From: Lepidodermella squamata
Lineage: Eukaryota > Animalia > Gastrotricha
Reading direction: 5' to 3'
DNA: 64,000 bases
Assembly (NCBI GenBank): GCA_047495785.1
Contig: JBLDXI010000042.1
Span: forward strand, 3,038,001-3,102,000
Position numbers and translations under genes: made by a program. Numbering within the stretch: position 1 is the first letter of the stretch; each line of letters begins with the position of its first letter. The notes beneath the pieces were generated by a model. That model had not been told where the DNA came from. It made no database searches and was given only the letters and a program-made list of their open reading frames with translations. Below, piece by piece: positions 29,549-56,965 of the stretch.

Positions 29549-30623
29549 CTACTTTTGAACGCAGAACGGATGGTTCCCTGATGTTTTGGCATAGAAGCTT
29601 CCGCGGTTCGCATTTAAGATGGACCAGTGCCCGACTTGTTGGGTAACCGCCGCGTCGCAAGGATTGCATTTGCCCTTTGAAAACAGCTGTTTAGACTCAC
29701 ACGGGCAGTAGCTCAACGAACAGGAATCTGATGCGCCCTCAAAAGAAGCTGCATAGACATATAGAGCTCGGAAGTGAGAGCATCCAAAGAAGTCTTTCGT
29801 TGGATCAACTAAAAAGTAGAAAGTTAGATGTGATTAATCGGCTTATGCTAGAAATGATTGAAAGCTTACTGTATGACTGTCGGCGTCTGCGTGTTACGCA
29901 TCCTGGCTGAATGTTCGCGTCGTTTACCCAGAAGTCAACGTGGCCAACAGCTATTTGAAGACCACACCAAGAGGTGTGGATAACATCGACGAAATCAGCA
30001 TCACCTGAGTCAACTCGGGCGGTGGCATTCTTCTTATCGAAGTTGGGATTAGCTGGGTCCAGAGCTGTGATGCGACCTAATTTCCCCTTGGTAATCGATT
30101 TGCCGAAGAAGCCGCAAACATGTGACCCAAGGGAGAAACCGATACACTGCGTGTTTTTCGGCTGGAATTTCGGATTCGCCTCCAAAAACTGCCGGATCAT
30201 CGGGCCAATAACTCGAGTGTTGCTGGCTGGCTGGGTGTACAGGTTGAGCCCGAAGCCATTCTCAGCACCTTTCTTCCAGTCGACAAACAAGAGGTCAGCA
30301 TTTGGGTGAACCTTTTCTAGTTTGCCGAAAATAGCCCGATAAGCATTGTCATCATCCGACCAATATTCATTCCAGCCGTGGGCAATAACGACAATTTGGT
30401 TCATATCGAGGTTCAAACTGCTGTTGATCAGTTGGTATTTGTTATTGCGAAACATGTAAAATTTCGGAGCGATTTTTTCCGGAGCCATCGGAAGCGGCAG
30501 GTCGTTGAAAGGGTTTTCATTCGAGAAGCAGCCGAGGTCGCCGTAGCATTGGGTCTTTGCTGCCTGAGAATAGCCAACGGCCAGTGTTGTAAGAACAACG
30601 AGGTTGAAGATATTGCAATACAT
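29549..30623 (-). CDS. Secreted pancreatic-lipase-family lipase/phospholipase A1 (exons 30623-29870, 29808-29549), no PLAT domain
   Basis: CYGDLGCFS, HGW, GFSLG (Ser), ALDPA (Asp), DADFVDVIHT, GHVDF, QPGC; exon 2 gives CSH (His) and ends FYAKTSGNHPFCVQK*. Confidence 0.92.
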
Positions 30624-32141: not shown

Positions 32142-35100
32142 TTAAACGAGAGAAATCGCGCCACTAGATCGGGCTGTCGCGGCACTTGAACGCTTCATGT
32201 CGCGATCCGATGCGAAAGCAGCCGGAGTTGGGTCTATCTCTTCCGGCTTTTCGGGCGAGTCGATTTTCACGGTGTTCGAGCCGCGGTATCGAACATTGCT
32301 GTTCGAGCTCGCACTCGCCGGCTCGGAAGCGCCATTCTGCGCCAACATCATGGCCCCGAAGCCATTGTTACCCTGCGTTGCACCTACATGATCGACAAAC
32401 TGATTCGCACGTTGCCGAACTAGGTCAGTGAGAGGCAACTGAAAATAGGGCAGATTTAATAAAAACATAAAAACATCAATAAAAAATAAAAAATTACAAT
32501 TAAAAAAAATTAAAAAAAAACAGGTGATATATATTTTTTCTAGCTACTGTAAGAACTAAAAGCTAAATCGCTAACTCATACATGTATCAAATAAAGTAGG
32601 CTTTAATTCGACTGAAAAGTCGGGCTGGAGTCTTGCTCGACTCATCTTCCTCAACTTCTGTATTTGACCTTTAAAAAATGCCTGAAAATCCGAAAGATTC
32701 ATGAAAAAAATTCTGCTATAGGAAAAATTTAAGAATAAATTAATTACATTTTGCTTCTTCGCGTCCAGCTTAGCTTTGTATAGAAATTCGCAAAGAGACG
32801 CGACCATAGCTAAGGCAAGGCCGCCGATTAGGATGTAGAAAACACCGGCAACTTTGGGCAGAGTCAGGGCGTTAGTTGCGTCTTTTCGTTGTATATCCGT
32901 GTTGTCACACTCGCCCATTTCGACCCACCAACGTTTCTCCAAGCTTTGCAGAATGCCCTTCTCGCGAAGCTCCAACACAGCCAAGTTCAAAGCGTCCCTA
33001 TAAAAATCATGAAATAATAAGAAAATTGCACAATAAATCCCAAGTAAAACAAGAAAAAACAAGAAACTCTGAAAATCAGTAGAAAATTAAAGGGGTCATG
33101 ACAAGTGCCCACCGCCCGCCCCAAATATAGGGTTCCAGACCAAATTTGAGGCTCTAGCACTGGACTTCCCCAAAATCGGGGTTTTCCGACCTTTCTAAAT
33201 TCTCGGTTTTCATTATCATGCCTCGCCGGTTCTTCTCACAAATTCGCGTATTTTGCGCTACGAGCGGTCAGTTTACTAATTACTGGGTGGCCAAAAAGAG
33301 CCGCAGGGGGCGAAGTTCATTGATTGGATTGCGCATCAATTTGATGAGTAAGAAATGGAAGAATTTCAAGCATTCTTTTGCCAATGCAACTCTTCAATTT
33401 CTTAAAACTACTCATTAAATTGATGCACAATCCAATCAATGAACTTCGCCCCCTGCGGCTCTTTTTGGCCACCCTGTATACTTCAGCCTGGAGAGCCGAT
33501 ATCGATTCTATGTATCGATTTTACAAATCAGTGATTTTTCCGATATTTGAAGTTCCGAAGTCCAGGAAGCCAACATAGAAGATTTCTGTGCCGAGCCAGA
33601 TAGCTAAAACAAAAAATTCCAGGGTCTAGAGGGCTAGTATCGATCGAGGGAAGAATAGGCCGAAATTGCGAAAAAATGGGCCAATTTTAATACAGAAACT
33701 TGAATTTAGGTTTGAAACTTCAATTTTTCTGGTGAAAATAATTAGAACCTATAAAATTCACCCCATATATTAGATCTATGGCGAAATCTTACTTCAGGTC
33801 TGATCCTTTCGGAGTGGCTATGCCGTAGCCCTTCGAGTCGAGATTGATGCCGACCTTCATCGTCTCGCATGGCTTCCTCGAATTGATGTAATCATTCATA
33901 GTCGACTCGAGAAGGAACGCGTACTTGCCATTCGATTTCCGAACCCGTTTGATGCCCTCATCAATCGACTCGGCAAACACGCTCGGCTCAGCCGAGACCA
34001 TGAAGGCCCACATTCGTTGATAGACGGAATATTTCGAGGTCTGAAAAAACTGAGCAGTCGAACCCCTGCGCAGGGTGCCGTATTTGATATCGGTTTGTTT
34101 CGCCAAATCTTCGGCTGATTCAATCGGGGTCGACATACGTTCGACAGTCAAAAAGGCGGCGAGATTGGCGGTGTAAGATGAAATGATGATCAGGGTGAAG
34201 AACCACCACACCGAGCCGACGATTCGGCCGGAGACTGACCGCGGCGATATGTCGACGTCTTGCCGCATGAATGCGCCCAGGGAGAACCATAGAGAGTTTG
34301 AAAATGTGAAATCGTTGACGAAAACTTTGCGGCGCAGAGTTTCGAGCTGTTTTACGCTTGATATCGGTCCGCAAGTGTCTACTTCGGTTATCGGGCTGTT
34401 GTGGCCGGTGGTCGCGGTTGGTGCTCCGCTTTCGTTGCATGTTATTTCGCCGGTGTCTTCACTTTGAGGAAGTGGGGCAGGCGGCGGTTGATTCTCGTCA
34501 GCTTAGAAATAAATTAGGAATAATAATTTAAGAAGTCTTGAAAAAAGAGAGGCCATAAAATCAGGAAAAAATAGGCCAGGCAGCTTAATTACCGGAATCG
34601 GGTTTTTTCGGTAAATTTCGGTTAATTCCAGTAAATTTGAAATTTTTTAGTTTAAAATGGCGGATATTGATTGGAGATTCTCCCGGTAGTTGTAATTACA
34701 GCGTGTCCCACAAGTAACGCAAGGAAATTAAATGCACGGCAAAAGGTTCAGAAATTCTAAATTGAGAGACGAAGTTACATCTCATAGTAAGAAAATGTTT
34801 GGGAAAATTCAAAAAATCACGAGAAAAGTAATCAAACATGTCACTTGTTAATGGGTTTAAAAACGTCTGGAGACATTTGGTCCAACCAGGTAGAATACCG
34901 AAAATTACCGAACCAGTTACCATCGGGGCTTTTCGGGGTTTCTTTCGGGTAATTATTTTTCTTCGGTTGAATCGCGGATAAAATATGGAATATTCTCTCG
35001 GTAGGTTTAGTGGGTGAAATGTCAACTCGTCCGCGACAAGTCATCCGGTGACAACTCATCCGCGACAACTCGTCCAGCGACAACTCATCCGAAATTAAAT

Positions 35101-38100
35101 AAATATTTAAATAATTATTTTTAGTGACAACTCATCCGGTGACAACTGGTCCGGCCCGGCCGAGTTGTCGCGGATGAGTTGACACTAAAATTAAATAATT
35201 AATTATTTTTTAATCATTTCAATTTTCGGACAACTCGTCCACGGTCAACTCGTCCGAAATTCAAAATATAACATGAGTTAGTAAATTCAGGATGAGTTGT
35301 CGCGGATGACTTGTCCGTGGACGAGTTGTCCGAAAATTGAAATAATTAAAAAATAATTAATTATTTAATTTTAGTGTTTAATTTGATTCATAGTAAATTC
35401 GTAACCGCAAATTCGTACAGTGGTTGATTCATAACGTGATATTATCGTACAGAGTAAGTTCGTATCAATACATTTTCATATTAAAAGTGGTGACTTTTTC
35501 GTAGCAAAATAAATTATCATAATTTCAATTCGAAAGTGGTGATCTTTTCGTAACCGGACCTAAATGAAAACACAAAATAGTGATCGTTTCGAAGCAAACG
35601 CGCGATATGATGTAATATTCTCGCCCTTAAAACCGTGGTTTCGCTGATTCGGCACCCATTCATCGTGATTTTGCGTAAGATGCGTTGTACAATTTGCAAT
35701 CAAGTTTATAAAAATGAGCGCGGCCTTAAGATACATGTTGGGCGTGTGCACTCGGATAAGGCTAGGGTAGATGTAGCTGAAAATCATGCTGATAACACAG
35801 CTTCATCCTCTGCGGCGAGCCTAACTCTAAATAATACAACTATCTCTGGCCTGCTCCCGAGAGAAGCATCAACTCCGAGACTTACCGACTTGGCTCTTCC
35901 TCAGCCGCCGTTGTCGACCAGCGTAGTAGTACCCACGCAGCTCCCTGTTTTACCGACTGCTCCTCCGCTACCGGCCGGGCATGAGGCTCCGTTTTACTAT
36001 TGGCAGCAGCAGCAACAGCAACAGTGGCAACAGTTTCAGCAATGGCAACAACAGTTTTACCAAAATATTCAACAGCAACCATTTCCGTTGGCTCAGCCAC
36101 CTCCGTTTATTGGTCCAATTCCTCAAGTTCAAGTACAGTCCACTCATGTGCCCGGAGCTCAACAACCTGGCTCAGAAGTCTCAACCCAACCTGCCTTGGT
36201 TCAAATTCCAAGACTCAAACAGCCAAATCCCCTGCTGATTCCTGATCGTTTCTACACCACTACCAGGAACAACAAGGCTCTTGGTTCTAAAGGTAAGATT
36301 GCGAATTTCGTTTAAAATTCCGAGATACAGTATTCCACCTTAAAGGTTTTGCCTACTACTGGATTGAATCTCGCGGAAACTTTCGGTGCAAAGACTGTTT
36401 CATCAGCCCGATTCTGAACGCTAACGGAACTGAGGTAGTTGGGCTGGTTGGTAACCATGACCATGCTCCTGATTTCTTCGAAATCGAGTCCGACATCGCT
36501 GCTGCTAGGATGAGAGCACGAGTAAGGTCGGAGAACTGGTTGGGAATTCCCGAAATCTATCGATCCGAGCTGAAAACCGCGCTTGATTTCGGCGAAAAAG
36601 TCGGCTTAGACCGCGAGGCATTGGCTGCAAAGATCCCCAACTTCGAGGACATGAAACGGTCACTGTATCGGATCCGTGGCAAACAGGAGCCTCGGCGACC
36701 TCGTCCCTACAAGGTTACAGCGTGGTTCTCAATGCTGGAAAGCCCCGATGAGAAGATGATGAAATACATGCGAAATCAGCGGGGCGATTTGGTCTTACGA
36801 CATCATGAGATCGTGCTCAACATTCGGAAACCTGGTGCTTTCGTGGTTTTCGCGACCGACGCCGACCTGATTCGGCTGGCAAGCAGCGAGCGTTGGTTTG
36901 TTGATGGCACCTTCAAGTGCGTTCCTGCCATCTTTTATCAGCTCGTGACCTTCTTATCGTTGGTTGACAATAATAAGTTTGGTATCCATGGTGGTTTCGT
37001 GCTGATGACTAACAAGACCGAAGAGCTGTACGAGAAGGTTTTCAAGTACCTTAACAACGTCCGAACAGCATTCTTTATCGTCCGTGAAGAAGCTCCTCAG
37101 CACGTCGAACTCAACTTGTTCTTCGAGTACTTCGAGAATTTTTGGTTTCGGATCGGCATGGACTGCTGGAACGTCCACGGCCTCAATAAAAGGACTAACA
37201 ACTTTGCCGAGGGTGGCAACAGCAAGATTAACAAAAAGGTTAAGGTGCCTCATCCACATGTGTGGCGCTTTTGCAACGTCATGTTGGAGTTGGAAGCCGA
37301 AAATCGTGCTGCCCTCGACCAGATTCGAGTAAAAAATTACAAAGTGCCGACGAAGCGAGTCTATAAGCGCTTGAATGATCGATTTACTGAGTTTTGGAAA
37401 GACCTCGCTGCTGGTAGGATGGGTTTCATGCAGTTTCTCGATGCTGCGGCTAATCAGCTTTCTCAGTTGAAGGAGAAGAAGCCGGCAGTTGATCGCTTGG
37501 GGCTTGATGATGAGGAAGGTGTTGCGCTGGACGTTGTTATTGAAGATGGCGAGGAAGAGTCGAGTGATGAAGAAACTGCTGATGAATAACTGCTAACACT
37601 CTGCCTTAATGTCTATCATCTGTTTAACTGTGTTTGAAGGGAGCAATGTTATAAGCGTTACGAATAGATCACGACTTCGTCTTAACTTGTTATGAAAGGA
37701 CCGCTAAATTAAAGTGTTACGAAATGATCACCACTTCGTCTTAATTTGTTATGAAAAGATCACAAAATTAATTTTCGAAAATTAATTTTGCTATGAAAAT
37801 CCGTTACGAAAAGATCACCGAAAGTGATATGAAAAGATACCTCGTTTGTACGAAAATATCACGTTACGAATTTGCGGGTACCAACTTACTATTCACCTTT
37901 AATTTTATTGTTTAATTTAAAAAAAATAATGAATTTCCTACAAAAAAATGGCCAGATTAAGAAATAATTCGCAAATTCTGGGGCACGCCGTAGAAAAATA
38001 CCAGCAAAAATATGCAAAATCATAAATGGGTAAAAATTGCCCCATTTCATTAAAAGAAATGAAATTTGACAATTCATGGAATTTCAAAATCGAAGTTTGA

Positions 38101-41032
38101 TTTAAAAATTTTAATTTCAACTTTTTGAAATTGTAAAATTGTGAACTTAATTCTTTTGAAATAAAAATATTGCTTGCTAGAATAAAAAATAATGATTGCT
38201 GTGATTTAGATTAGTATCTTACCCTCTTCGTGCCATTCGTAAGGACTGAATCTCGAAACCAGAAATAGGACAACCGAAACGCCAATATAAGCAAAGGCGA
38301 TGCACATCCAAATTTCATAAGACAAAGGATCGAGGAAGGAAAACACGCTCGGCTTGGTTTTCTGCGGCTTTTTTATCATAATCGAAATGCCGAGGGTTGT
38401 GAACGGCTTCGTGAAATCGACCACCTTCTCACGTTGGGCTGTAATTGTCAGCGGGGCGATGGCCATATCGGCGATTCCGTCAATCACCTCGCCAACCATG
38501 CCGTTCCAGTGGCCGGTTGCGTTCGGCGTGCCGTAGGCGTTGTCGGCAACCATGCGAAATTCGTACTTGAATTTAGCGACTTCGGCTACAGCAGCCGTCA
38601 AATCGGCAACGTAGCCCTCGTAGCGGTCGTTGCCTGTGTACTTGTGGGCGTCATCTTTCAGCTTTAAAAACGGCAATACCTAAAAGTTGACATGAAAATT
38701 AGAATCATCAGACTAGCGATTGCCAGAGGTGAAGGTAAAAAAATATTTTTTCCCTCATTCGGAATTAGGAAAATATATGGCTATTATCAAAATTCGATTT
38801 GACCGAAAATTAAAAAAAAATGAAACAGAATTTAAGAAAAAACGTTCGAAACGATTGAAAAGTGTTTTTTCAAAAATTGAATCTACCGAAGAAAAATTCA
38901 AATTTATACCGAAAAAAACCCGATTGTAACTGGTTCGGTAATTATCGGTATTTCCCCTGGTTAGACCTGATTAGAATTTCACTGGGTTTCTTCATTCGTG
39001 TCGTGAATTTTCATAGACAAATACCACCTTTGTGGCTTTAGGAATTTTTCCGGCCATGAGATAGAAAATCGCCCATAATTTGGGAGTTTCTTATCTTCTT
39101 TCCGTGTATTTCTATTTTATTTTTGATTATGATAGACCCATTAGACTAAATTCAAAAATTGACGTAAAATTACCGGTATAGTCGTAACGATGCGAGTTCG
39201 ATTAGATTCGGCCTTAGAAGCGTTATGAATCCTCCGTTCTTGACCAGGCGGAATGTACTCGAAGCCATAAGTCGGCGTCCAATGTCCCAACTAAAAAATT
39301 AATTATTCCCATTAAAAGTGTCTTTAATGAATGAGCGTCTTGAAAAATTACCTTTCGATATCCAACTCTAACATTTTCCTGACCGTAATAGATGATCATG
39401 TAATCAGCTCGTTCGCCGTTCATATTGAACCGAATTTTGCCGGTTAACTCTGATATGTAAGTTTTCTAAGGAAAAACATCATTTTCAGAGCTATTCAAAT
39501 AATTTCGAAAACTTTACCAATTTAAGGCGGCGAATAACTTCGGCACCAGCTTCCATGATTGGAACAGGGCGGCCGAGGCACATTTTAGTCTCCGCCTTTG
39601 AAGACGACATTCGGACCTGAGAACGCTTATTCATGTTAGGAAAAGTTGTCCCCCCAGTTTTGACCCACTGCTCCAGCATTGAGTAGAAAATTTCCGTGAA
39701 TTCAGTCGCCATTATTTGATTGGCCTATTAATAAAAAAAATTAAAAAAGAAATTGGAATGGAGAAATTTTGTTACCGAAAATCTCCCGGTACCAGCGCCA
39801 GGAAACTGGGTCATATTGAGATTTTTCCAATCTCTTATCAACTTTTGGATATGAGGAGTTTGCGATCGAGGCGGGAGAAGCTGGAATCCGCTGATCCGAA
39901 AATTTTTTGCCCGCAGATTCATTGGAAGAAAAATTTCTTCGAGGTCAGAGTCAAAACTCTAAAAAATCAAATAAACCTGGGTAAAATTTGATTAAATTAC
40001 GGCTTACCAAGCCAATGATTAGGTATTCACTCGTATCGCCAACCATGTCGACATCTTTCAGCTGAAATTTTTTCCAAAAATTCCGGATTTTTTTTTACAC
40101 CAGATCGAACTTACGCATCGCAAGAATGTTGTTAGAATTTTTTCATTTCGAATATCGATGACAATATTGCCAACATCACGGTGGAAATGCTTCATCCTAT
40201 CAGCAATTTCCCGCTCATCGCCGCCTTTCACCAACTCCAGCTTCGATTCGATGATTTTGCCATCTCGCGAAAATCGCTTGTACAAATCATTCAAGCGCAG
40301 CAGACCGTCATCCGTGTCGTAGAACGCGAAGAACGACTCCCAATTTTTGTGCTTCATCGCCGCGTAAACAGCATCGCCGTAACTTGGGCCGAACTGCAAC
40401 TCGTAGGGTGACACCTGGTCGAAATTATTCGGATCCGGGTCCATTCCGGTATCGAAAAGCATGAGGGGAATTTGAAAGAGGGTTGAGTAGGATCGCAATA
40501 AGGGCAAATGCTCGAATCGATAGCCAAATATTATCGGCAATTTTCCAGCTTCCAACAGCCGACAGACTAAACAATTTTAAAATTAAAATTGAAATTTTAA
40601 TTTTTTTTAATAAATTCATACCTTGCTGGCCAAATGCGAAAATATCGTTGAAATTGGTTGGAGCATCCTCGAAAATTAGTTTGACCTGGCGCGCCGAGTT
40701 GGCGGGAGACGCTTGAGTCGGAACCGCAAGTCGATTCGTTGCCATCCCCGCAAATCCGCCATATCGCTTCGTTTTCGCAGTGATCGGCGCAGAATTGATT
40801 GATGATGAAGAACTAGCACCTATTGTTACATTCGCGGCTAATCGGCTTGAAATTGTGTATCGAACAGCAGACACGAGGTGAGCATCTTGGTGATGATAAA
40901 CCAGAGCTGTAAGAAAAAAATTCGCAAAATTCGCAAAAAATATTGGTTATTCAAATTACTAAATTGAGCTTCGACCGATTGAGATTGAGCTCGAGATGAA
41001 GCTATTGCGGTGAGAATTATTAATAGCAACAT
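32142..41032 (-). CDS. AMPA-type ionotropic glutamate receptor subunit. Exons 41032-40960, 40906-40622, 40566-40115, 40061-40008, 39958-39776, 39724-39518, 39465-39352, 39290-39174, 38679-38223, 34501-33793, 32997-32748, 32438-32142 (alternative last exon 32681-32571)
   Basis: All junctions are GT-AG and phase-compatible. Motifs: [102 protein letters not shown]. Confidence 0.95.
33283..33476. mobile_element. TA-flanked palindromic MITE in an iGluR intron
   Basis: ~68-bp near-perfect TIRs C(A/T)GGGTGGCCAAAAAGAGCCGCAGGGGGCGAAG; relative at 50321-50487. Confidence 0.9.
35013..35376. mobile_element. Foldback-like element made of GACAACTC(A/G)TCC units in direct and inverted arrays
   Basis: More than ten unit copies; IR pairs 35020-35042/35162-35184 and 35182-35255/35302-35377. 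Confidence 0.8.
35385..37897 (+). mobile_element. Mutator-like (MULE) DNA transposon, internally deleted
   Basis: Imperfect TIRs GATTCATAGTAAATTCGTAACCGCAAATTCGTA / TACGAATTTGCGGGTACCAACTTACTATTCACC with subterminal repeats; TSD TTTAATTT at 35377-35384 and 37898-37905. Confidence 0.9.
35680..37589 (+). CDS. C2H2 - Q/P-rich - FLYWCH-like - MULE transposase derivative (exons 35680-36292, 36346-37589)
   Basis: CTIC..HVGRVH; 53-nt phase-1 intron; KGFAYYW..CKDC..HDH; [12 protein letters not shown]; [10 protein letters not shown]; YFENFW; [12 protein letters not shown]. Confidence 0.88.
38870..39135. mobile_element. Degenerate copy of the CAGCGTGTCCCA MITE family in an iGluR intron
   Basis: CCCGATTGTAACTGGTTCGGTAATTATCGGTATT...CCGGCCATGAGA. 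Confidence 0.65.
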
Positions 41033-42395: not shown

Positions 42396-42860
42396 TCAGT
42401 TTGAGGCAATATCACCATCGTATTTCCCGCCCAGAATGTCCTTGGCGATGCTTTTAGCCCACAAATAGGACGAGCCGTTGTTTTCGCAGACTTGCCGCGA
42501 CCCGAGAAGAGCTAGGCAGTGTTGCATTCGAACGTCGTAGAGCGCCCGATCTTTGACTTGCATCGGCAGATTTTCCCATACTGACGGCGCTTTTTCTCTC
42601 AGCCGAAGTATACGTTTAGCCAAAACAACTGATGAAAAACAATGATTGTAATTCGAATCAGAATTAAGATAAAGTGTAATGCCTTACTTCGAATAAGAGC
42701 AGCCTTGCGAGTCGAGATGCCAGACAAAGCCGGGGCGAAATTTGTTGGAGAAATCGCTTGGTGATCCATCTGCAAAACGGGGGAGGGAAGTTCAATAAAC
42801 CAAGCTGAAAGCCAAGCCGGTGGTAATTACGAAAAACGTGAAGAAGATCGCGAGTGGCAT
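42396..42860 (-). pseudogene. Orphan secreted protein, copy 1, with a +1 frameshift just after the signal peptide (pseudogene or assembly indel)
   Basis: MPLAIFFTFFVITTGLAFSLV then a stop. Removing one base at 42797-42799 restores colinearity with the copy at 50835-51310; same phase-1 intron. Confidence 0.7.
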
Positions 42861-44254: not shown

Positions 44255-45308
44255 ATGATGCCTAAAACGTCGTTGTTTCGATTTGATTTCATGAATCAGA
44301 AGAGAGGAATAATTCCTCCGCAATTGAAATGGTTCTGTTTCGGATTTCTCTTATCTTGGATCATCATCGAAACCGCCCCAAGGATCCACTTCAAGAAATG
44401 CACTAACTGCCTTAACGAATCAACATCAACCGCCGTTGTAGAAAATGCTATAGCATCCATGCGGGTCGATTCTTCCAATTTAGACGAGCTCCTAGCTAGG
44501 CGCATCCGAGTGCTTTGTCTCATCGTCACTTCTGGACGGTATCACCGGTCCCGAGCATCCGCGGTCCGTTCTACCTGGGCAAAACGATGTAGCAAATATG
44601 TTTTCGTCACCGACATCGAAGATCCGGCACTGCCGAGCGGTGTGGTTGTCGCGAACAAAACAACTCATGCCGACCTTTGGGCGAAAACAAGAGCCGGCTT
44701 CCTGTGGGCGTACGACAACTATCGTAATGAATTTGACTGGTTCGTGAAAGCCGACGATGATACGTTTATGATTATGGAAAATTTGAGAGCTTTCCTCGCC
44801 GACTACAGAGCGGACGATGCTATTTACTTGGGCCGGGAATTGAGGCCTCCGAAGTGGTCTAATACCCTGCCTTATAACTCCGGTGGGTCTGGCTATGTCC
44901 TCAGCCGAGGAGCTTTATTCACTCTGGTCGAAAAAGCGTTTCAAAACAGCTCGATCTGTAACGATTCCAGCATACAGGGGGCAGAAGGTAAACTGCATAT
45001 TTTCAAAAAATTATGTATTAATTGAAGTTATAGATAAATTTATCGGGCAATGTTTCGGCCATGTTGGTGTTTCTACTGTTGACACGAAGGATCATGTCAA
45101 TAGGCACCGGTTCATCCCCGTCACTTTAGGTGGCATACTCAGTAAAGGAACTTTCACACCGTCAGATTGGTTGAGGGCATCGTTGAGAGGCTTCACCGAT
45201 GGTGAAGAGTGCTGCTCCAGTCTGGCCATTAGCTTTCACTACGTAAGTCCTTCGGATATGGTTTTGTATGATTACCATCATTTACCGGCTTCATTTGGTT
45301 GGCCATAA
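44255..45308 (+). CDS. C1GALT1: Core-1 beta-1,3-galactosyltransferase-like (GT31), copy A; intron 44988-45033; +1 frameshift near 45276
   Basis: RVLCLIVT, TWAKRC, LWAKT, DWFVKADDDTF, YNSGGSGYVLSR, ED, CCSSLAISFHYV. The homologous tail IIYRLHLVGHN is in a shifted frame. Confidence 0.88.
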
Positions 45309-45896
45309 CATCATGAGATCCTACAACCATTTGAAACTTGCAACTGCTTATGATTAAGTTGCCAATCGGATGGAAAGAAATGGATATTGAACTTCGTTTA
45401 GCCGCAAAATCTTTACCTAACGTGTGCCTTTCATATGTATGCCGTAATTTCTGTTGAAAATTTATGAGTATATGATGAATAATGATGAAAATTAATTTTC
45501 AAAGTAAAACTGTTGGGAATACTCTTCATTTTTTGCACATATTTCAAATCTTTAATCCGGATAGTTGTGTCATCGCAAAGCCTTTTCTGACCGAAAAAGT
45601 TAAATATTAATAACCTTGAAGAAAGCTAAAGGAGAGGCAAATTGCACTCGGTTTCTGTCTTTTACTCATCCGTGATCCTAATGCCGGAAAAAGCGTTACA
45701 TTATATAAAAGTGTTTGAAGTTCGCGCATGTATCTCCGTTGTTGAAGACATTTTTTTAGTGTAATACTTATTACATGCACACATGAACGGCACGAGGCGT
45801 CAGTCGCCCTGTTATAATGCTTACTAACATGAGCATGCCATAGTTCTTACCATCCTTTCTGAATATTTATGAAGTTGTTCAAGTGATTGGAGGGGG

Positions 45897-47216
45897 ATGA
45901 AACTCACGGTTGGAGGCTCAATTGAAATCAGCAATCATCCTTCAGAGAACCATGGGCTACTACGCATAGTGGCGAATAGCAACAGACTCCCAGCGAGATA
46001 CAGCCGTAGTCGGAGAAAGGTCAAAACTTCAGCTAGATTCTGTTTGAGAGCAACGCAGAAAATTTGTGAAGGCATCACCGGAATCGGCCGTTCTGGAGGA
46101 GTATCTGGAGGAGCGATTTGCTGGTTTTTAGTCGGAGTCTTCATTACAAACGTGGTACAGCGACCAACAGAATTATCCATGGAAAAGCCAACACGAAACG
46201 GCAATATCTCCACAACAGGTTTTATCGAAACTACGTTCCAGTCGCTTAACAATAAATCAAAAGACGTTGCCGACATATTGGCGGATAGGATACGAGTGTT
46301 ATGCATAGTCATCACAACAGAGAGACACCACAAAAGTAAGGCTGCGACTGTTAGCCAGACTTGGGGGAAGCGCTGCACAAAGCTTGTATTCGCAACAGAT
46401 GCTGAGGATAAGGATCTGCCGAATACGGTCGTTGCATTTAACAAAACTACCCATAGACAACTTTGGTCAAAGACTTACTCAGGATTTGCATGGGCCTATG
46501 ATGAGCACCTCAATGATTTCGACTGGTTCCTTAAGGCAGATGACGACACTTACATTTTCATGGAGAATCTTAGGGCTATGTTGATCGATTACAACCCGAA
46601 TGATGGAGTCTTCCTTGGCAGGGAGTACCGTCCTTTCAACTGGAGTGATGCAGATTCTTATCACTCAGGAGGCCCCGGCTATGTTCTGAGCCGAGGGGCC
46701 TTGATCAAACTAGTCGAACAAGCCTTTAGGAACTTAACGCAATTTTGTTTTGACTATGATGCGAAGTGGCCTGAAGGTAACAATAATCATTCGTCTTCGA
46801 ACTGTCTCTGTTTTACTATTATTATTTTCACGCTAATAGATGTGCTTATAGCTAAATGTTTAGCCGCAGTAGGCGTCCCAACGAAAGACACACCAGATCA
46901 CATGAACAGGGCTCGGTTTTTCCCTACTGCAATCGCCGATAATTTGATACGAGGCAAATTGCGGAGTACAAGCTGGCTTTGGGAATACATGGAGGATTTC
47001 GCAGACGGTGAGGAATGCTGCTCGAGTTTAGCAATCGGCTTTCACTATGTATACCCAGAGAATATGGTACTTTACGAGTACATTGTGTATAGATTTCATT
47101 TGTTTGGCAGGAATGTTTTCGAAAATAATTTCTTGCTTGCGAAGTTGACGCGAGAAACTGTTGTAGAGACTTTGAACAGGAAAGGATACGCGGAAATAAA
47201 GACACATCCAGTATGA
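45897..47216 (+). CDS. C1GALT1: C1GALT1-like glycosyltransferase, copy B1; intron 46777-46839 (63 nt, in frame)
   Basis: Type II TM; DWFLKADDDTY, GGPGYVLSR, PE|DV after splicing, CCSSLAIGFHY. Confidence 0.92.
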   Translation: MKLTVGGSIEISNHPSENHGLLRIVANSNRLPARYSRSRRKVKTSARFCLRATQKICEGITGIGRSGGVSGGAICWFLVGVFITNVVQRPTELSMEKPTRNGNISTTGFIETTFQSLNNKSKDVADILADRIRVLCIVITTERHHKSKAATVSQTWGKRCTKLVFATDAEDKDLPNTVVAFNKTTHRQLWSKTYSGFAWAYDEHLNDFDWFLKADDDTYIFMENLRAMLIDYNPNDGVFLGREYRPFNWSDADSYHSGGPGYVLSRGALIKLVEQAFRNLTQFCFDYDAKWPEGNNNHSSSNCLCFTIIIFTLIDVLIAKCLAAVGVPTKDTPDHMNRARFFPTAIADNLIRGKLRSTSWLWEYMEDFADGEECCSSLAIGFHYVYPENMVLYEYIVYRFHLFGRNVFENNFLLAKLTRETVVETLNRKGYAEIKTHPV

Positions 47217-47531
47217 AGTATGAGAACTCATAAACCCGTATGTACAATTTATACTGTATATACGTAGCATAATATACGATCCTTTAGGCGGCATATTGCA
47301 GTTGGCGGCGGTCGGGGTGGTTACAAAATGATTAGCGACACGTGACCCTACGCAGTTGAGCAAATATGAAAGTAGTTTGTAGTTATCATGAAGTAGCTAG
47401 ATTGGCAATGTTTGGAGTACTTGCCATGGCGCTATTTCTTCGCCATCGGCTGTTACGAATCAAAATCAAAGAAGCTGTTGCTTTTAAAGCATTGCGGAAA
47501 AACCACCTTTCATATTCAAAGGAGATCAATT

Positions 47532-48214
47532 ATTTTTATTTATTTATTTATTTATTCGTTATCGCAAGTGCACTTGTCATGCGTACGCAATTAGCCAGCC
47601 AGGCGCCTCACTGAGGATAAAAGATATTTCTCTAGGTTACAGTCAACATTAAGATATTGTTTAAAAACATTTAAAGAGGCAGAAACGACGTCAGCAGGTA
47701 GTTTGTTCCAATAATTAATTGTTCTTCTGTTAAAAAAATATTTTTTGCAATCGCGTTTACACTTAGAAGGTCTTAGCCGGTGTTTGCTAGCGTAATTTGA
47801 TTTAGAAAATTCATAGAAGTCGTCAAAAGTGACATCATAGAAGTGGTGATATAGCTTATAAGTTAATTTCAAATCATTTTTAAAGCGACGCTTTTCCAAG
47901 GAGTCCATTCCACTACGTTTCAATAAACAGTCATACGTAATATGGGAGTAGCGAGGTATATTAAAGGCTCTTTTGAGAAAATTAAATTGTAATTTTTCTA
48001 GTGATTCTATGACAGTTAGCAAGTATGGCGAATATACGGATGAACAGTAATCGATTATAGGAAGGACATACACACGGTAGGCTTCAAGTCTGAAGGAAGT
48101 ATTAGTAAAGGCTCTACAAATCAATCCACATAGTCTAAGACATTTTGTTTTAAGGTTATCGCAGTGAATTCTGAAGTCGAATTTTTTGTCCACAATTATA
48201 CCTAAATCACGAGG
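47532..48214 (-). mobile_element. 5'-truncated CR1/L2-type LINE 3' end with (AATA)n tail
   Basis: YRVYVLPIIDYCSSVYSP..LEKLQ..SLEKRR..FFNRRTINYWNKLP is the typical CR1-clade ORF2 C-terminus. Absent from the paralogous site near 62670. Confidence 0.92.
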
Positions 48215-48814
48215 TTAAAGAATCAAGTCTAAGCCGCTTATTTCCAAAACTCTTGAAACTAATGGATATCCTTTTCTGTGAATTCCATATCGCAACTTCA
48301 TATGCCAAGTTCTGAGCATTATTGTCTGTTGTGCTCTCCCAGGAAGCAAAATGGCGCAATGTGAAATCAGAGAAGAATAAGAAAAGTAGGCGGAGGGGAT
48401 ATTGCGCAATATAAATGCGAATAATGACGCTCAAGAATCGACAGTGTTCATTTTGTGAGGCAACAAGGGACTCAAACAAGGGAGATGATCTTGATGTCTT
48501 TGACAGCCCTGTAAAGCTGGATAGGATTAAAGCAAGTGACGGCCGACATCAAAATGACCTCAATCATGAATCCAATCGAAAAACCATACACCACCAAACT
48601 GCTGAACATGCTACCCACCTGGCTTGCTTCAAGTGTTAAAACGGTTGAATTGCTCACTCTTATCGTAAATTCCAGGCGGGATATCTTGCCCAACTACCGA
48701 CTGGATGTTCAAATTGAGGATGACGATGTTGGCCGGCTGTCATCCCAAGGGGTGATTTCATTTGGCCGTCAATTTGATGGAATGACCGATCGATCAATCG
48801 TTCAATCGCCCATA

Positions 48815-49097
48815 CATTATGTGACCACTTTTTAGGCGGGAAACTACGCCGTCTCTTATTGGTTCATTCAAAATACTACGCGGGCGATTCAAACAGTTGT
48901 TTTTTGCGGAAAATGATCGTTTTTACAACGATTGGCACGCGTTTTCGGTTTTCGATAATATAGCGCCATATAGCGCTAAAACGTTGCAAAAACTATTGTT
49001 TTTAATGTAAAAATGATCATTTGAATCGCCCGCGTAGTATTTTGAATGAACCAATAGGAGACGGCGTTGTTTCCCGCCTAAAAAGTGGTCACATAAT
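48815..49097. mobile_element. MITE with ~77-bp TIRs and TA duplication
   Basis: ATTATGTGACCACTTTTTAGGCGGGAAAC... inverted at both ends; empty site CCAATAGTTGTT at ~63243. Confidence 0.93.
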
Positions 49098-49477
49098 TAG
49101 TTGTTGGACCATTTTATTCAACTGGGTGTAGGCAAATCGGAAAATTCATGCATTACATCAATCAAGTCGACATAGCTACTAGCTGTACATCCCCAGTTCT
49201 CAACGATCGTCAGCTGTACCGCAATCTCTACTTGACCCAAACAACTGACAAGTACACCGCTCAGCCAATACTCAACTTCATAAGAGAGGTTGGTAAATGG
49301 AATAAAATAGCGATAATCTCCCGCACATCATGGTCTGTAAACGACTACTCAAATGCAATATTAATCTACCAGAAAGCTGTGGAGGCTAATTTCACAGTGA
49401 AATGGTTTGACTTGGTTTACGGGGCAATTATGACTGACGAAGTGATAATATCCCTGAAAGAATCGGATGCACGCATA

Positions 49478-49672
49478 GTTAGTTAGTTAGTTAGTTAGTT
49501 TTATTTTTGCTCCCAACATGTTACAATTTATTAGGTATCTATCATATAGATACTAAGTAGTTATATATATCACATATATATTGATAAATCTGGAGCCAGG
49601 GACACTTATGCGCCCTGTCCATCAGTATCACAGCATTGAGATAGAATTTTTAACATTATTTTAATAATTTAA
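49478..49672 (-). mobile_element. ~195-bp insertion with (TAAC)n tail, probable LINE/SINE 3' end
   Basis: (GTTA)x5 at the left end; absent from the paralog at ~63622. Confidence 0.65.
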
Positions 49673-49727
49673 TAATAATTGCTTACATGTCAGACCTAAA
49701 TATGCTATATTCTTTTATATGCATTTT

Positions 49728-50172
49728 ACATTTTAGTCTCGGCCTTGGAAGACGACATTCGGATCTTAGAACGCTTATTCATGTTAGGAAAAGTTGTCGC
49801 GCCAGTTTTAACCCATTGTTCCAGCATTGAATAGAAAATTTCCGTGAATTCAGTCGTCATTATTTGATTTGCCTAAATCAACAAAAATTCAAAAAATTAT
49901 GAGTGACGAAATTTTGTTACCGAAAATCTTCCGGTACCAGCGCCAGGAAACTGGGTCATATTTAGATTTTTCCAATCACTTATCAACTTTTGGACGTGAG
50001 GAGTTTGCGATCGAGGCGGGAGAAGCTGGAATCCGCTGATTCGAAAATTCTTAGCTCGCAGATTCATTGGAAGAAAAATTTCTTCAAGGTCAGAATCGAA
50101 ACTCTAAAAGTTTTTATTCAAATTTGAAAAAAGGTAAATTAAAAATTACTGCTTACCAAGCCAATGATTAGG
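49728..50172 (-). pseudogene. Fragment of a duplicated iGluR (end of exon 4, exon 5, most of exon 6)
   Basis: Colinear with 39580-40022; splice sites kept, introns more diverged than exons. Confidence 0.9.
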
Positions 50173-50320
50173 GTAATAATGACCGTCAATTAGGGTGGGT
50201 TTTTTTCTGTTGAGGCTTAATTAAATTCCGTGAACCGACCGCTCATAGCGCAAAATACGCTTAATTAATCGGTTATTAATTAGGACCAGACATATATGTA
50301 TAATACAAATTCAGGTTTTA

Positions 50321-50487
50321 CAGGGTGACCAAAAAATTCTGCAGAAGGCGAATTTAATGAGGAGTTGTAAGAAGTTGAAAAAAATTTCAAGCATTATTTT
50401 GCCAATGGAACTCCTCAATCTCTTGAAACTCCTCATTAAAATTATGCGCATCGAATTCGCCTTCTGCAGAATTTTTTGGCCACACTG
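50321..50487. mobile_element. MITE related to 33283-33476
   Basis: CAGGGTGACCAAAAAATTCTGCAGAAGGCGAAT IR; shared core TTTCAAGCATT.TTTTGCCAATG. Confidence 0.8.
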
Positions 50488-50834
50488 AAGGAAGACTTGA
50501 AACTCTGAATTATGAATTAAGAATTATGAAAATTATAATTTGGTAAAATAAGTCCCGCTGCCTTTTAGTGAACCCTGAGTTCAATTTTCAACATGGCACA
50601 TGCATTCAACCGTGACCATGAACTGTGACTGCATCCGAAACGCTACTTTTGAATATTACCTATTTTATTCCGTTTTGAAGGCTAAATTCATGAAAACAAG
50701 GTCCGCAGCCATCAAGGCTCTAATATGTATGAGAAAAAGCTAATACTGATCAAACGAATACATTAGGATCGATCTTCTGGAAGCTCAGAGTGCGAATTGC
50801 AACTTTGAGGCCCACTAGCGCATTTGAATAAGAC

Positions 50835-51310
50835 TCAGTTTGAGATAATATCACCATCGTATTTCCCGCCCAGAATGTCCTTGGCGATGTTCTTGGCCCA
50901 CAGATAGAAGGAACCGTTGTTTTCGCAGACTTGCCGCGACCCGAGAAGAGCTAGGCAGTGTTGCATTCGAACATCGTACAGCGCCCGGTCTTTGACTTGC
51001 AACGGCAGATTTTCCCACACTGTCGGAGCGTTTTCTCGCAGCCGAAGAATCCTTTTAGCCAAAATGACTGATGGAAATACAAAAATTGTGATTAAAAGAT
51101 CGGAGTTCCTAAAGCCTATAATGTCTTACTTCGAATAACAGCAGCCTTGCGATTCGAGATGCCAGACAAGGCCGGGGTCAAAATCTTCGGAGAAATGTTG
51201 ATTTGTTGATCAGCCATCGGCAAAACAGAGGAAGCAGGCACTGGAATTACCAAGCTATAAGCCATGCCGGTGGCAATTACGGAAAACGTGAAAAAGATCG
51301 CGACTAGCAT
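50835..51310 (-). CDS. Orphan secreted protein / prohormone-like, copy 2 (~137 aa; exons 51310-51130, 51067-50835)
   Basis: Signal peptide MLVAIFFTFSVIATGMAYS; RK and KR pairs; conserved exon 2 with CLALLGSRQVC. Confidence 0.8.
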
Positions 51311-52613
51311 GATCGAAATTTTCGCAGGTAATATAGTTAAAGTATCGGTTGAGATGACTTTAATAGGAATGCAAGTGACAATGCGAGTATTCGAATTTAT
51401 ATAGTGGCAACCCTCAGTTCCGCCCATTTGTTGATGTTTCAATTTTGACATTTTGTAATAATTGTCAGGGTCGAATTTATGTACAGTTTGGGATGAATAG
51501 GCAATTTAATAAAGCCTTATTGTCGACTTGACCTGTGGTAATAATACGTATTTTTACGTGCAATAATTTGTCACTTCTCGCCCTCATTTCACCTCAGGTT
51601 TTCTGCGTCGAATGTCAGATTTTGGAATTCCAGGATAAAAATTGGGCAAGGGAAACTCAATTGACTAATATCATGACGCGGTATTGAGCTGGGTAGGGCC
51701 ATCTCAGGCCACCTTGCGACTATGTGACTTGCGACAAATGATAAATCATCGCTGTTTTAAAAAGTAAAAGTCGCTTTTTTAATTCAATTTCTATTGCTCA
51801 ATATGCTGTCATTAACTTTGATTGATAAAGATTTGATTGATTGCGCAGTTATATTACGCGGCCCTGGTTAGATGATGGCTAATCAGACATGGGTAACTCA
51901 TATTACAGGTAGGCGGAGACAACACACAAATACAGTAATTTCGCATTTTCTCAGGGGAAATACAGGACTTTTTGAATCACTCTTGCTTTTATCTCTGTTC
52001 ATCCGATTCCGAATGAAAGAATTGGCGGTAAATCTAAACCCGTACAAGGCATGCAAAGGTTTACCATAGGCCCAATGAATTCTGACTGGGGAATGCAACG
52101 AAGCTACAACCCGCTACAATTGACAAAATAGCCAAAAACTATCAGTCATGGATCGTAAAATTTTGGAATTTTGCCGATGAATGATTGTTCCAATTATGGC
52201 CTCAAGTTTTCCAAGTAAAGCCTGAGTTTTGAAACATGAGCCATCTGAATTGTCCTAGATCCTAAAAGATACGCCTTTCTTTCAAAATCGAGCTTTGCAT
52301 TCAACTGAAGCGCGCTGCTGTGCTGAATTCATGAACATTTCCCTTCACTTGAAAACATTTTTTGTACCGAATTCAACGCCGAACCAGCCAGCCCATTGGT
52401 CGCGTATGCTCTGTAATTCAAAATTAACTGGAAAATTCCCAGAAAACGGATAATTATAATGCAGAAACCATTCCCCTTTATTGGATATGGATAGAAACCT
52501 GATACAGGAATCGCTTCTTGGATTGCATTTCTCCCTATGCATCATATCAAGGCTTGTTTAATGTTTTCAGTGCTGTGACTTGATTCCGGAAGATGAAGTC
52601 CTCAAGCTCCTGA

Positions 52614-52962
52614 CTATACTCGAGCGTAATAACGCATATTTGCAGCTGGCGCGGTGGTCGATTTAGCAATAACCGCGTAAAGTTGGCAAAAGTAGGCTTG
52701 CGAATCCCAGCCAATGCCCTTGCACATAGCCGTGTACTGGGATGATAAGCACAAAGTCGCACAAGCTTCAGCGCTGGTAACACCGAATTTGACATAGAGC
52801 AACTGGTTTCCCAAAGTAACAGTTGACGCCTTGAATTTGTCCAGAGCTGAAATGACAGGAAGAGTGCGCAAAAAAGTTGGCAATATATCGTAGTTATTTC
52901 TTACATGCTGCCATGGAAAGGCCGATGAACAAGCCGGCGATAAGAGCTAGTTTGCAGAACAT
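52614..52962 (-). CDS. Small secreted single PAN/apple-domain protein (~96 aa; exons 52962-52905, 52846-52614)
   Basis: MFCKLALIAGLFIGLSMAA signal; SAEACATLC..CKGIGWD....CQLY PAN pattern. Confidence 0.82.
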
Positions 52963-53289
52963 TGTTGAGGAGGTGACTGTTAAAAGTTATCTGATTTGCG
53001 ATTTTCTCGCCGTATTTAAAGCCAGGAACTTGAACTCAGCGGAGTGTTTTTCACTCGTTTATTTGATCATCTGTTCGAACCAGTATGTACATTTCGCTAC
53101 GTTTCACGACTAAAATCACTGTTTGTTCATCTGTTGTTTTCAACGAAGAATCAGGCGTGGCTGGCAAGCTCCCTGGGACGAAGCTCCCTGTTTGACTAGT
53201 GCCAACAACCGACAACTTCCGTCAATTTTGAAAAATTCTTGGCGCACTCATTTCGTAGATTTTCGCCAATTCAGACGGGCAAAATTCAT

Positions 53290-53440
53290 CGTGCATTCAA
53301 TAGGCACCATTCATTATAGCATTCTCAAAAAAGGAAATTTCACACCTTCGAAATTACGAAGTTGGTCGGATAGAAACTTCCTTTAGCCACAACATCTTCA
53401 ACAAACGTTTGGCTTGGATCAAGTGTGCCGTAATTTGTGT
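53290..53440 (+). pseudogene. Remnant of the 3' end of C1GALT copy A in the duplicated block
   Basis: aataggcacc..aaaggaaatttcacacc..aacttcctttagcc..tgccgtaattt matches 45100-45450 with deletions. Confidence 0.55.
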
Positions 53441-53833
53441 AAATCAAGGTTACTTTTCCAGAGTAAAGCTGAGCAGAATATTCCCCAGTGCCTAAAATGG
53501 ATTGCGAATCCTCATCCGCGAGAAATTTTCTGAACAGAGACGTCTAAAACTATGAATTTGTAGAAAGCTAACTGCTAGACAAAAAATTGCGCTCGGTTTC
53601 TGCCTTGATAGGCTGCCTCAGTTATGCTAATGCCGGAATATGTGCTAAATTATATGAAAAAGTGGCATGACTTGCTGGCGAAACTTTTAGTGTAATACTC
53701 ATTACACAACATGCACACACGAACAGCACGAGGCGTCACTCGCCCAGTTATAATACTTATAGTAGCCTTAACATGCCATAGTTCTTACCATCCTTTCTGC
53801 TTCATATTGAAGTTGTTTAAGTGATTGGAGAGG

Positions 53834-55149
53834 ATGAAACTCACAGCTGGTGGCTTAATCGGAATCAGCAATCATCCTTCAGATGCAGAAAACCACCAGC
53901 CTCAAAACATTGCAGCGGATAGCAGGAGATTCCCGGCGAAATATAGTCGCAGTCGGAGGCAGTTCAAACCTTCAGGTAGACTCTGCCTAAGAGCAACGCG
54001 GAAAATTTGTGAAGGGATCACAGGATTCGGACGTTCTGGTGGTGTATTACCAGCGATTTGCTGGTTTTTCGTCGGAGTATTCATTACAAACATTTTACAA
54101 CGGCCAACACAACTATCTATGGACAAGCCAACACGATATGACAGCTTCTCGACAACCGGTTTCATTGAAACTTTGTTTCAATCGCTTAACAATAAATCAA
54201 AAGACGTTGCCGACATATTGGCGGATAGGATACGAGTATTGTGCATTGTTATTACGACAAGAAACAATCATGAAAGCAAGGCCAGGACCGTTAGCCAGAC
54301 GTGGGGAAAGCGATGTACACAGCTTGTATTCGCGACGGATGCTGAGGACGAGGAGCTGCCAAATACGGTCGTTGCACACAACAAAACTACCCATGAGCAA
54401 CTGTGGTCCAAAACTTACACAGGTTTCGAATGGGCCTATGATAAGCACATCAATGATTTCGACTGGTTCCTGAAGGCAGATGACGACACTTATATATTCA
54501 TGGAGAATCTCAGGGCTATGTTAATCGATTACAACCCGAATGATGGAGTTTTTCTGGGCAGGGAGTATCGTCCTTACAACTGGAGTTATCCAGAGTCTTA
54601 TCACGGCGGAGGGCCTGGCTATGTCCTGAGCCGAGGGGCCTTGATCAAACTAGTCGAACAAGGCTTCCGGAACGAGTCAACATTTTGTTTTAACTACGAT
54701 TCAATGTGGCCTGAGGGTGAGAGTAAAAACATTCGGCTTCCCCTTTATTTAATTTGACTGTTTCATGCCTAGATGTAGCTATGGCGCAATGTTTGGCCGA
54801 CGTCGGCATTCCGACAAAAGACACACCTGATCATGTTAACAGGGCTCGTTTTATACCTACTGCAATCGTCGATAATTTGATTCCAGGCAAATTGAGATAT
54901 ACTAGCTGGCTTTGGGAATACATGGAGGATTTTGCAGACGCTGAAGAATGCTGCTCGAGTATTGCAATCGGCTTTCATTACGTGTACCCATATGATATGG
55001 TCTTTTACGAGTACATTGTGTATAGATTTCATTTATTTGGTAGGAATGTTTATGAAACCAATTACGCAATCGCGAAGTTGACTCGTGAAACTGTTGTAGA
55101 GACTTTGAACATGAAAGGATACGCGGAAGTAAAGGCACGTCCTGCATGA
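53834..55149 (+). CDS. C1GALT1: C1GALT1-like glycosyltransferase, copy B2; intron 54717-54772
   Basis: Same motifs as B1; first ATG at 53834. Confidence 0.92.
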
Positions 55150-55187
55150 GGCTTTCAATTTTTTAAACCCTAATTAATTATTGGATA

Positions 55188-56064
55188 CACCTTTTCCCGG
55201 AGCAATTTGCCACGGCACCATTGGAGTTTGCCGATCTATTTTTAGCATGAACTTGTTGACATGAATGATCATCATTATTTTTTGCGTCTTCTTCGTCGTC
55301 GTATTCCACTTCTTTGGTAATGATAGTAATGAATGGATTTTATTGCTTTTTGCGCTAATCAGTAACAAAAAATACGGCACGCGCGAACTTTTTATTACGC
55401 TGATATTGTTTGGGTCAATTTTTTGTTTGTACTATTAGCAGGCGTTAACAACCTATTTTCAAAGAAAATAATAGGTACTAAGAAAAACTCCATTCTTAGT
55501 CTTTTTCTTCCTTGAAGTCCCACTTCTGAATAAGAAAACGTAAATAACGTCAGATTTTTCCAATGGTTTGAAATTGCAGTATGTCTAGGCTGAGCTTCGA
55601 AACTTTAAAATTTAAGTATTTTGGCAACTTTAAAACTGTTATAAATCGCCAATAAACAGCGTTTCAAGACTTGAACTATTTAACAAAAAATTCGAGCTAA
55701 CGCGTTTTCGCGGCGGTTGTGAAAATTTGCGGTGATCAAATAGAGCAAACGTTATTATCATCATCTCTGAGCGCTTCAAAAAATTTGCCTTCGAAGTCTT
55801 TTATCCGAAAATCGAAATAATTTAGTACAAAGCCACATTTAGCGACATCGGCGCTAGATTTGGCACAAAGATTGCCGTATTTTTTGTTACTGATTAGCGC
55901 AAAAAGCAATAAAATCCATTCATTACTATCATTACCAAAGAAGTGGAATACGACGACGAAGAAGACGCAAAAAATAATGATCATCATTCATGTCAACAAG
56001 TTCATGCTAAAAATAGATCGGCAAACTCCAATGGTGCCGTGGCAAATTGCTCCGGGAAAAGGTG
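55188..56064. mobile_element. Young TA-flanked non-autonomous element with 192-bp near-identical TIRs
   Basis: 55188-55379 versus 55873-56064; one mismatch noticed. ta|CACCTTTTCCCGG...CCGGGAAAAGGTG|ta. Confidence 0.93.
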
Positions 56065-56907: not shown

Positions 56908-56965
56908 GTTGTAGAGACGTTGAACATGAAAGGATACGCGGAAATAAAGACACCTCCTGTATGAG
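56908..56965 (+). pseudogene. 3' remnant of a deleted C1GALT copy (B3)
   Basis: VVETLNMKGYAEIKTPPV*, followed by downstream DNA homologous to that after B1 and B5. Confidence 0.8.

Follow-up and report, generated by a model that had tools for sequence, protein, structure and literature searches.

No single-residue switch in synaptic physiology is better known than the Q/R site of AMPA-type glutamate receptors. An Arg in the pore, whether edited or genomic, gives a linear current–voltage relation and Ca2+ insensitivity (PMC13520880), and current work is still addressing how many Arg residues can be tolerated and what role the remaining filter plays (PMC12377769, PMC13520880). The window analyzed here is a stretch of 64,000 nucleotides from the gastrotrich Lepidodermella squamata (contig JBLDXI010000042.1, positions 3,038,001 to 3,102,000). 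It contains a receptor gene in which the DNA itself encodes the Arg, and an Asp replaces the Gly two residues further on. Two questions arise: whether this filter is real and maintained, and what an Asp might do beside an Arg. A natural Arg combined with an acidic residue at a near-invariant, disease-linked Gly is a ready-made test of charge balance within the filter, and it comes from a phylum whose molecular neurobiology has hardly been studied.

A single reading frame of the minus strand encoded the M2 pore loop, according to the reverse-complement translation (Table 1). The Q/R-site codon was CGG and was followed by CAA, GAC, GTC, and GAC. The aligned motif of vertebrate GluA1–4 was FMQQGCDISPRS in the search of PDB chains, and three of the five filter positions differed from it (Q to R at 0, G to D at +2, and C to V at +3), with the +1 Gln and the +4 Asp unchanged. 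The gene had R-Q-D-V-D in place of the canonical Q/R-Q-G-C-D, a filter that does not usually define membership of the AMPA clade. The CGG codon and the Gly-to-Asp change were as an earlier note on this DNA had described them; its account of the pore was incomplete, however, because the Cys at +3 had also become Val.

One contig of X1 (a DNA run, depth 72) spanned 33781–34322 and one of X2 (an independent run from 2015) spanned 34252–34322, both with 0 differences to the window. No variant was listed in the run data at 34251–34265, and neither CAG nor GGC, the read alternatives that the earlier note had envisaged, was found in these contigs. Three more genes, from a related organism, encoded the same motif with other codons, which excluded chance or sequencing error.

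The exon carrying M2 matched GluA1–4 at 2.8e-85 in a search of all PDB chains, and the region from M2 through S2 was 73–79% identical to vertebrate GluA1–4. The equivalents of all eight glutamate-contact residues (Y450, P478, T480, R485, S654, T655, E705, and Y732) aligned with the GluA1 and GluA4 chains, so that the ligand-binding residues were indeed intact. S1 retained RYEGY and APLTIT..RE, S2 retained GST, LLEST, and KGYG, and M3 retained SYTANLAAF. The domain content, the PDB matches, and the position in the tree indicated that the gene encodes an AMPA-type ionotropic glutamate receptor subunit (AKDF class, AMPA clade), as had been proposed.

With relatives as guides, the gene was traced on the minus strand from ~41.0 to 32.1 kb. 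The tblastn matches with relatives followed the order amino-terminal domain, S1, M1, M2, M3, S2, M4, and C-terminal tail, and the Pfam domains ANF_receptor, Lig_chan-Glu_bd, and Lig_chan were present on the relatives' ORFs. The four exons from S1 to the stop codon joined in frame at canonical AG/GT sites. A signal-peptide start is possible at 41032. The -ISLV end resembles a class I PDZ ligand and was kept in the relative L003. These in-frame exons, canonical splice sites, and conserved glutamate-binding residues indicated an intact gene.

Table 1. Positions of the parts of the receptor gene in the window, in the order of transcription.
Feature	Positions	Strand	Basis or remark
Amino-terminal domain exons, approximate borders	39168..40946	-	tblastn with the L003 protein, and reading frames
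Amino-terminal domain pieces	40907-40581, 40567-40106, 39973-39515 (short intron inside), 39459-39349, 39290-39168	-	
Exon with S1 (glutamate-binding residues) and M1	38223..38679	-	Donor G/GTAAG, phase 1; 216 bits to GluA1/2; 95% identical to L003
M1-M2 intron, 3.7 kb, with repeats and a MULE-like transposase ORF	34502..38222	-	
MULE-like transposase ORF	36510-37589	+	Pfam MULE, below cut-off
Exon with M1-M2 loop, M2, M3 (SYTANLAAF), and most of S2	33793..34501	-	Acceptor ctaAG, donor AA/GTAAG; 288 bits to GluA1-4; Pfam Lig_chan
M2 pore-loop motif	34245..34300	-	Window sequence, X1 and X2 contigs, codon comparison with L001, L003, and L005
Q/R-site Arg, CGG	34265-34263	-	
+2 Asp, GAC, normally Gly	34259-34257	-	
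+3 Val, GTC, normally Cys	34256-34254	-	
+4 Asp, GAC, conserved	34253-34251	-	
Exon with end of S2 and M4	32748..32997	-	Alignment of relatives, in-frame join
C-terminal tail, last coding exon	32142..32438	-	Ends -ISLV, then stop; splice joint predicted

A second, mutually exclusive M2 exon of the Gln type was not found in the window by tblastn with three relatives, and there was a single M2 exon. This exon aligned to the uninterrupted ORF of L003 from residue 240 onward. The window gene contained the introns 34502–38222 (3.7 kb) and 32998–33792 (0.8 kb), and the corresponding region L003:1949–3727 was one uninterrupted ORF. Since this orthologue is 91% identical and has no introns there, introns have evidently been gained or lost between related species, and have grown by transposons; parts of the 3.7-kb intron had a very high repeat depth.

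In the X2 run the exon bins were covered but the unique intron sequence was not, and 37% of its aligned records continued into unlike sequence, versus 4% in X1. This fits spliced RNA, although the RNA label itself is a tool's guess and the X2 contigs (71–155 letters) are shorter than needed to span splice joints. The best DNA run dates from 2024, and the locus was absent from another organism of its study. The gene is apparently expressed, as far as these short contigs of putative RNA indicate. At 34461–34556, around the acceptor and the first part of the M2 exon, X1 showed ~12 single-base differences and small indels at about half depth (41.5 of 96.3), a pattern that resembles two haplotypes. 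The variable, loop-coding part of the exon contains two of these differences (34461 and 34485).

An exhaustive phmmer search through 1.84 billion cluster representatives yielded 524 matches below 1e-30, and among the best 150 of these the RQDVD motif was found only in P0001 (82% identity). A word-based search starting from P0001 added P0166 and P0167, both with RQDVD. Among exon-sized relatives, the word-based protein search returned nothing closer than 75–79% identity and no further RQD. P0001, P0166, and P0167 are ORFs on gene-dense, short-intron contigs of 38–40% GC from common ENA metagenome assemblies. They most likely belong to one organism with a compact genome and three paralogues. The GC content of the window was 41%, and 43% is reported for L. 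squamata in its 2024 genome paper, in which the species was sequenced alongside C. elegans and an older public transcriptome was used (PMC11660948). P0166 was the orthologue of the window gene (90–91% amino-acid and 75% nucleotide identity) and lacked the introns found on either side of the window's M2 exon. The motif that the earlier note had ascribed to one gene was real, but it belonged to a small conserved family; the paralogue survey of M2 found it to be a clade feature common to P0166, P0167, and P0001.

The Arg codons of the four genes were CGG, CGT, AGG, and AGG, and the Asp codons were GAC or GAT. In none of the four did the Arg arise by ADAR editing of a CAG codon, and the earlier claim of a genomic, editing-free Arg held for all four genes. 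The paralogues were 71–91% identical overall, and their pore regions were 88–99% identical. In the M2–M3 block, dN was 0.03–0.10, with dS saturated or at least 1.4. With dN far below dS and with differing codons, selection has evidently kept the motif. These comparisons indicated that RQDVD has survived two or more duplications and a deep speciation, and that it is under strong purifying selection in at least four genes of at least two distantly related species.

The cytoplasmic loop between M1 and M2 (34340–34501 on the minus strand) was also unusual. It comprised 65 residues in the window gene and 65–125 across this gene, P0166, P0167, and P0001, in contrast to ~25 in GluA2, and it evolved fast. 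Between the window gene and P0166 only its last part was conserved, ending in (V/I)NDF. The long loop is a second trait specific to this clade, beside the pore loop.

The tree comprised 100 rows, most of them cluster representatives, with kainate-type sequences included, and was built with an IQ-TREE quick search. The four RQDVD genes formed one clade with a support of 100 and a long stem. This clade was nested in an AMPA clade of 62 rows (support 100) that also held vertebrate GluA1–4 and the AMPA receptors of Lingula, a crinoid, arthropods, and molluscs, together with nematode GLR-1-like sequences. Its surroundings were spiralian. Mollusc, nemertean, annelid, priapulid, and Macrostomum receptors adjoined it, and the rotifer sequences (Seison with GQGVE, and Rotaria) were not close. 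This indicated that the subfamily arose once within the protostome AMPA receptors, on a strongly supported branch separate from vertebrate GluA2, in line with the independent origin that had been suggested.

Along this tree, Arg at the Q/R site required ~8 changes of state, and Asp at +2 a single one. A constrained tree joining the Macrostomum RQGVD sequence to the RQDVD clade was not rejected, and its score exceeded that of the free quick tree by 36 log-likelihood units. Because of this better score, the order of change may be that Arg and Val came first and Gly changed to Asp later, which we hold loosely as both branches are long. A link to Macrostomum, if there is one, would agree with the relationship of gastrotrichs and flatworms.

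The hard-wired Arg was not special in itself. It recurred in other protostome AMPA-type genes and has been published for fishes and, one residue further on, for acoels (PMC13520880). Genomic RQGCD was found in the Schistocerca (locust) 'glutamate receptor 1-like' XP_049813861.1, genomic RRGC[D/E] in Helobdella HELRODRAFT_76743 and in loci from gutless-oligochaete metagenomes, and genomic RQGVD in Macrostomum lignano A0A1I8H4U7. Like the window gene, these genes have Arg at the Q/R site; unlike it, they retain the +2 Gly, and they lie on other branches, with Macrostomum possibly excepted. The Macrostomum gene also shares the +3 Val.

Several of these filters were unusual in their own right. The annelid sequences L064 and L067 (JGI gutless-oligochaete metagenomes), P0287 (Helobdella), and P0279 read FMRRGC[D/E]VCPRS, with two consecutive Arg residues that occupy the classical Q/R site and the 'Q2' site of acoels; no description of this double-Arg filter was found in the limited literature consulted. 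The Macrostomum lignano sequences P0002 and P0131 (A0A1I8GU24 and A0A1I8H4U7) had the filters N-Q-S-V-D and R-Q-G-V-D, both with the +3 Val of the window gene. The former combines an NMDA-like Asn at the Q/R/N site with Ser at +2. P0135, which sits on a Logan contig, was the sister of P0131 and had QQGVD; it was set aside.

AMPA receptor genes duplicate recurrently (Wang et al., J Gen Physiol 2026, PMC13520880), and the known systems can be set beside the gastrotrich gene. Vertebrate GluA2(R) shares with it the Arg, the M2 helix, the +4 Asp, SYTANLAAF, and the glutamate-binding residues. However, the GluA2 Arg is made by A-to-I editing of CAG, whereas that of the window gene is a genomic CGG; at +2 and +3, GluA2 has Gly and Cys, and the window gene Asp and Val. 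Hagfish and some teleost GluA2 genes are cited as having a genomic Arg at this site (Kung et al., 2001, cited in PMC13520880), and RQGCD was present in Eptatretus and several fish entries. These are GluA2 orthologues with the canonical G-C-D, whereas the gastrotrich gene is of protostome lineage and has D-V-D. The acoel gene Hof-98014323, which followed a lineage-specific duplication, encodes a genomic Arg at the second Gln (Q1R2) and yields a linear current–voltage relation and Ca2+ insensitivity (PMC13520880). It is likewise an invertebrate paralogue with a chromosomally encoded pore Arg, but its Arg lies one position further on, its Gly is kept, and its function has been measured; the window gene has its Arg at the classical site, has lost the Gly, and is known from sequence. 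In that study, a genomic Arg at the first position was cited for fishes and hagfish only, and the dataset was without gastrotrichs and rotifers (PMC13520880). The RQDVD genes would be the fifth or sixth independent case in the proposed recurrent evolution of voltage-independent AMPA receptors.

The Asp was another matter. Gly occupied +2 in 264 of the 275 pore loops collected, and Asp was found there only in the RQDVD genes and in one short Logan fragment, P0376. This fragment (QQDDLNPK) was rejected as a second case, as two residues that normally follow QQ appear to be missing. The back-translated AFMRQDVD was absent from 241 million JGI metagenome records, and none of the 80 ionotropic glutamate receptor loci kept from them had RQD. 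A limited keyword search of the literature found no description of Asp at +2 or of an RQD filter. Among the sequences examined, the +2 Asp had a single origin and was seen in no other AMPA-type receptor. A hard-wired Arg is thus a recurrent and published theme, and the R-Q-D-V-D filter is a new conserved variant. In man, one charged substitution of the same Gly is harmful: GRIA2 p.G609R arises de novo in a neurodevelopmental disorder, almost eliminates the current, and is dominant-negative (PMC6626132). Both replace the filter Gly with a charged residue, but G609R is a disease-causing Arg, whereas the Asp is natural, fixed, and conserved alongside the Q/R-site Arg.

Structural work places the inner mouth of the filter at G588, C589, and D590 (PMC7923540), and the carbonyls of Q586 and G588 form the filter constrictions and the spermidine (polyamine) site (PMC10584687). 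In molecular dynamics and patch-clamp experiments, two Arg residues abolished Ca2+ flux, and four left a femtosiemens K+ conductance only (PMC12377769). Against this background, we think it rather probable that the gene, which is intact and apparently expressed and belongs to a small, old, lineage-specific RQDVD subfamily, encodes a hard-wired counterpart of GluA2(R), with the Asp partly offsetting the Arg. With the Arg fixed, receptors containing such a subunit would act like receptors containing GluA2(R). By analogy with the biophysics of the family, they would be expected to pass little Ca2+, to show neither polyamine block nor inward rectification, and to have a low unitary conductance. 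The Asp would place a new fixed negative charge two residues deeper in the filter, close to the lower constriction, and it may offset the Arg either by electrostatics or by forming a salt bridge behind the filter. With such an offset, the filter would remain conductive and selective for cations even in receptors with Arg in several or all four subunits. Gating by glutamate is expected to be ordinary, since neither the binding pocket nor the SYTANLAAF gate departs from the canonical form.

One could suspect an assembly artefact or a pseudogene in decay, as the genome may derive from amplified DNA of single animals (PMC11660948) and a 3.7-kb transposon-bearing intron adjoins the M2 exon. The contigs of X1 and X2 are nevertheless identical to the window at the motif, the reading frame runs through every exon and the splice sites are canonical, dN falls well short of dS in comparisons with three relatives, and the motif is common to four genes. 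We regard this explanation as effectively refuted. The subunit might instead be an ordinary GluA2(R)-like partner that works only in heteromers with Q-type subunits, its Asp being a tolerated, near-neutral replacement; the +2 Gly would then need only an unusual backbone conformation, which Asp adopts more readily than most residues. Most bilaterians have 2–6 lineage-specific AMPA receptor genes and prefer heteromers (PMC13520880), which suits this explanation. The Asp is also unnecessary in an Arg-bearing subunit, because Arg occurs without it in other lineages (RQGCD, RRGCD, and RQGVD in the viable locust, annelid, and flatworm genes). Moreover, it is the backbone carbonyl of residue 588 that lines the pore (PMC10584687), and the Asp side chain is probably off-axis, so that any effect of it may be indirect or structural. 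On the other hand, the Asp is invariant across paralogues that are 71–91% identical with saturated synonymous sites, and the Gly that it replaces is otherwise nearly invariant and dominant-negative when mutated to Arg (PMC6626132). No Q-type AMPA ORF from the ENA assemblies of the paralogues was among the matches listed, and all three paralogues were RQDVD. P0310 (QQGTD, ENA) was rejected as a Gln-type partner because it came from a different sample. A partner role with a near-neutral Asp is a possibility to be taken seriously, although we lean against it.

It is unlikely that the selectivity has changed, for example toward anion permeability or divalent block at the new acidic site, or that the protein is a low-conducting regulatory or scaffolding subunit. 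Chloride was reportedly found by Burnashev in 1996 to permeate R-form AMPA and kainate channels, and the gastrotrich filter differs at three of its five positions. All-Arg GluA2 pores, too, pass cations at the femtosiemens level only (PMC12377769). However, the added charge is negative and favors cations, and the +4 Asp, the M3 gate, the binding pocket, and the PDZ-type tail are under strong constraint, as in a working synaptic cation channel. A further proposal goes beyond the GluA2(R)-like reading that we prefer: every AMPA-type subunit of this lineage might be R-Q-D-V-D, giving receptors with four Arg and four extra Asp, in which the Asp lets an all-Arg pore assemble and conduct. The three RQDVD paralogues and the lack of a Gln-type ORF among the matches listed weakly suggest that all-Arg receptors are conceivable, and we consider the full proposal doubtful. 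If true, it would be a natural route, free of editing and of partners, to Ca2+-impermeable, non-rectifying fast glutamate receptors, and G588D would be predicted to rescue mammalian GluA2(R) homomers. The RQDVD genes also offer a test of whether all-Arg AMPA receptors can work.

Several features were noted around the receptor gene. A partial second copy of an amino-terminal-domain exon lay at 49768–50103 (-), with a peptide nearly the same as that of 39973–39515, and an ORF of 75 residues was repeated at 42396–42623 (-) and 50835–51062 (-). Together, these copies suggest a segmental duplication located ~10 kb upstream of the receptor gene. Beside the duplicated fragment, an ORF at 49148–49486 (+) matched ANF_receptor (Venus-flytrap) and possibly belongs to another receptor gene as an exon. 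An ORF of a pancreatic-type lipase was located immediately downstream of the AMPA-type gene, at 29805–30623 (-; Pfam Lipase, 8e-43). On the plus strand, 44255–62422 was occupied by five or more Fringe/C1GalT1-like glycosyltransferase genes in tandem, with ORFs at 44255, 45897, 53825, 58644, and 61100, some of which were split by short introns.
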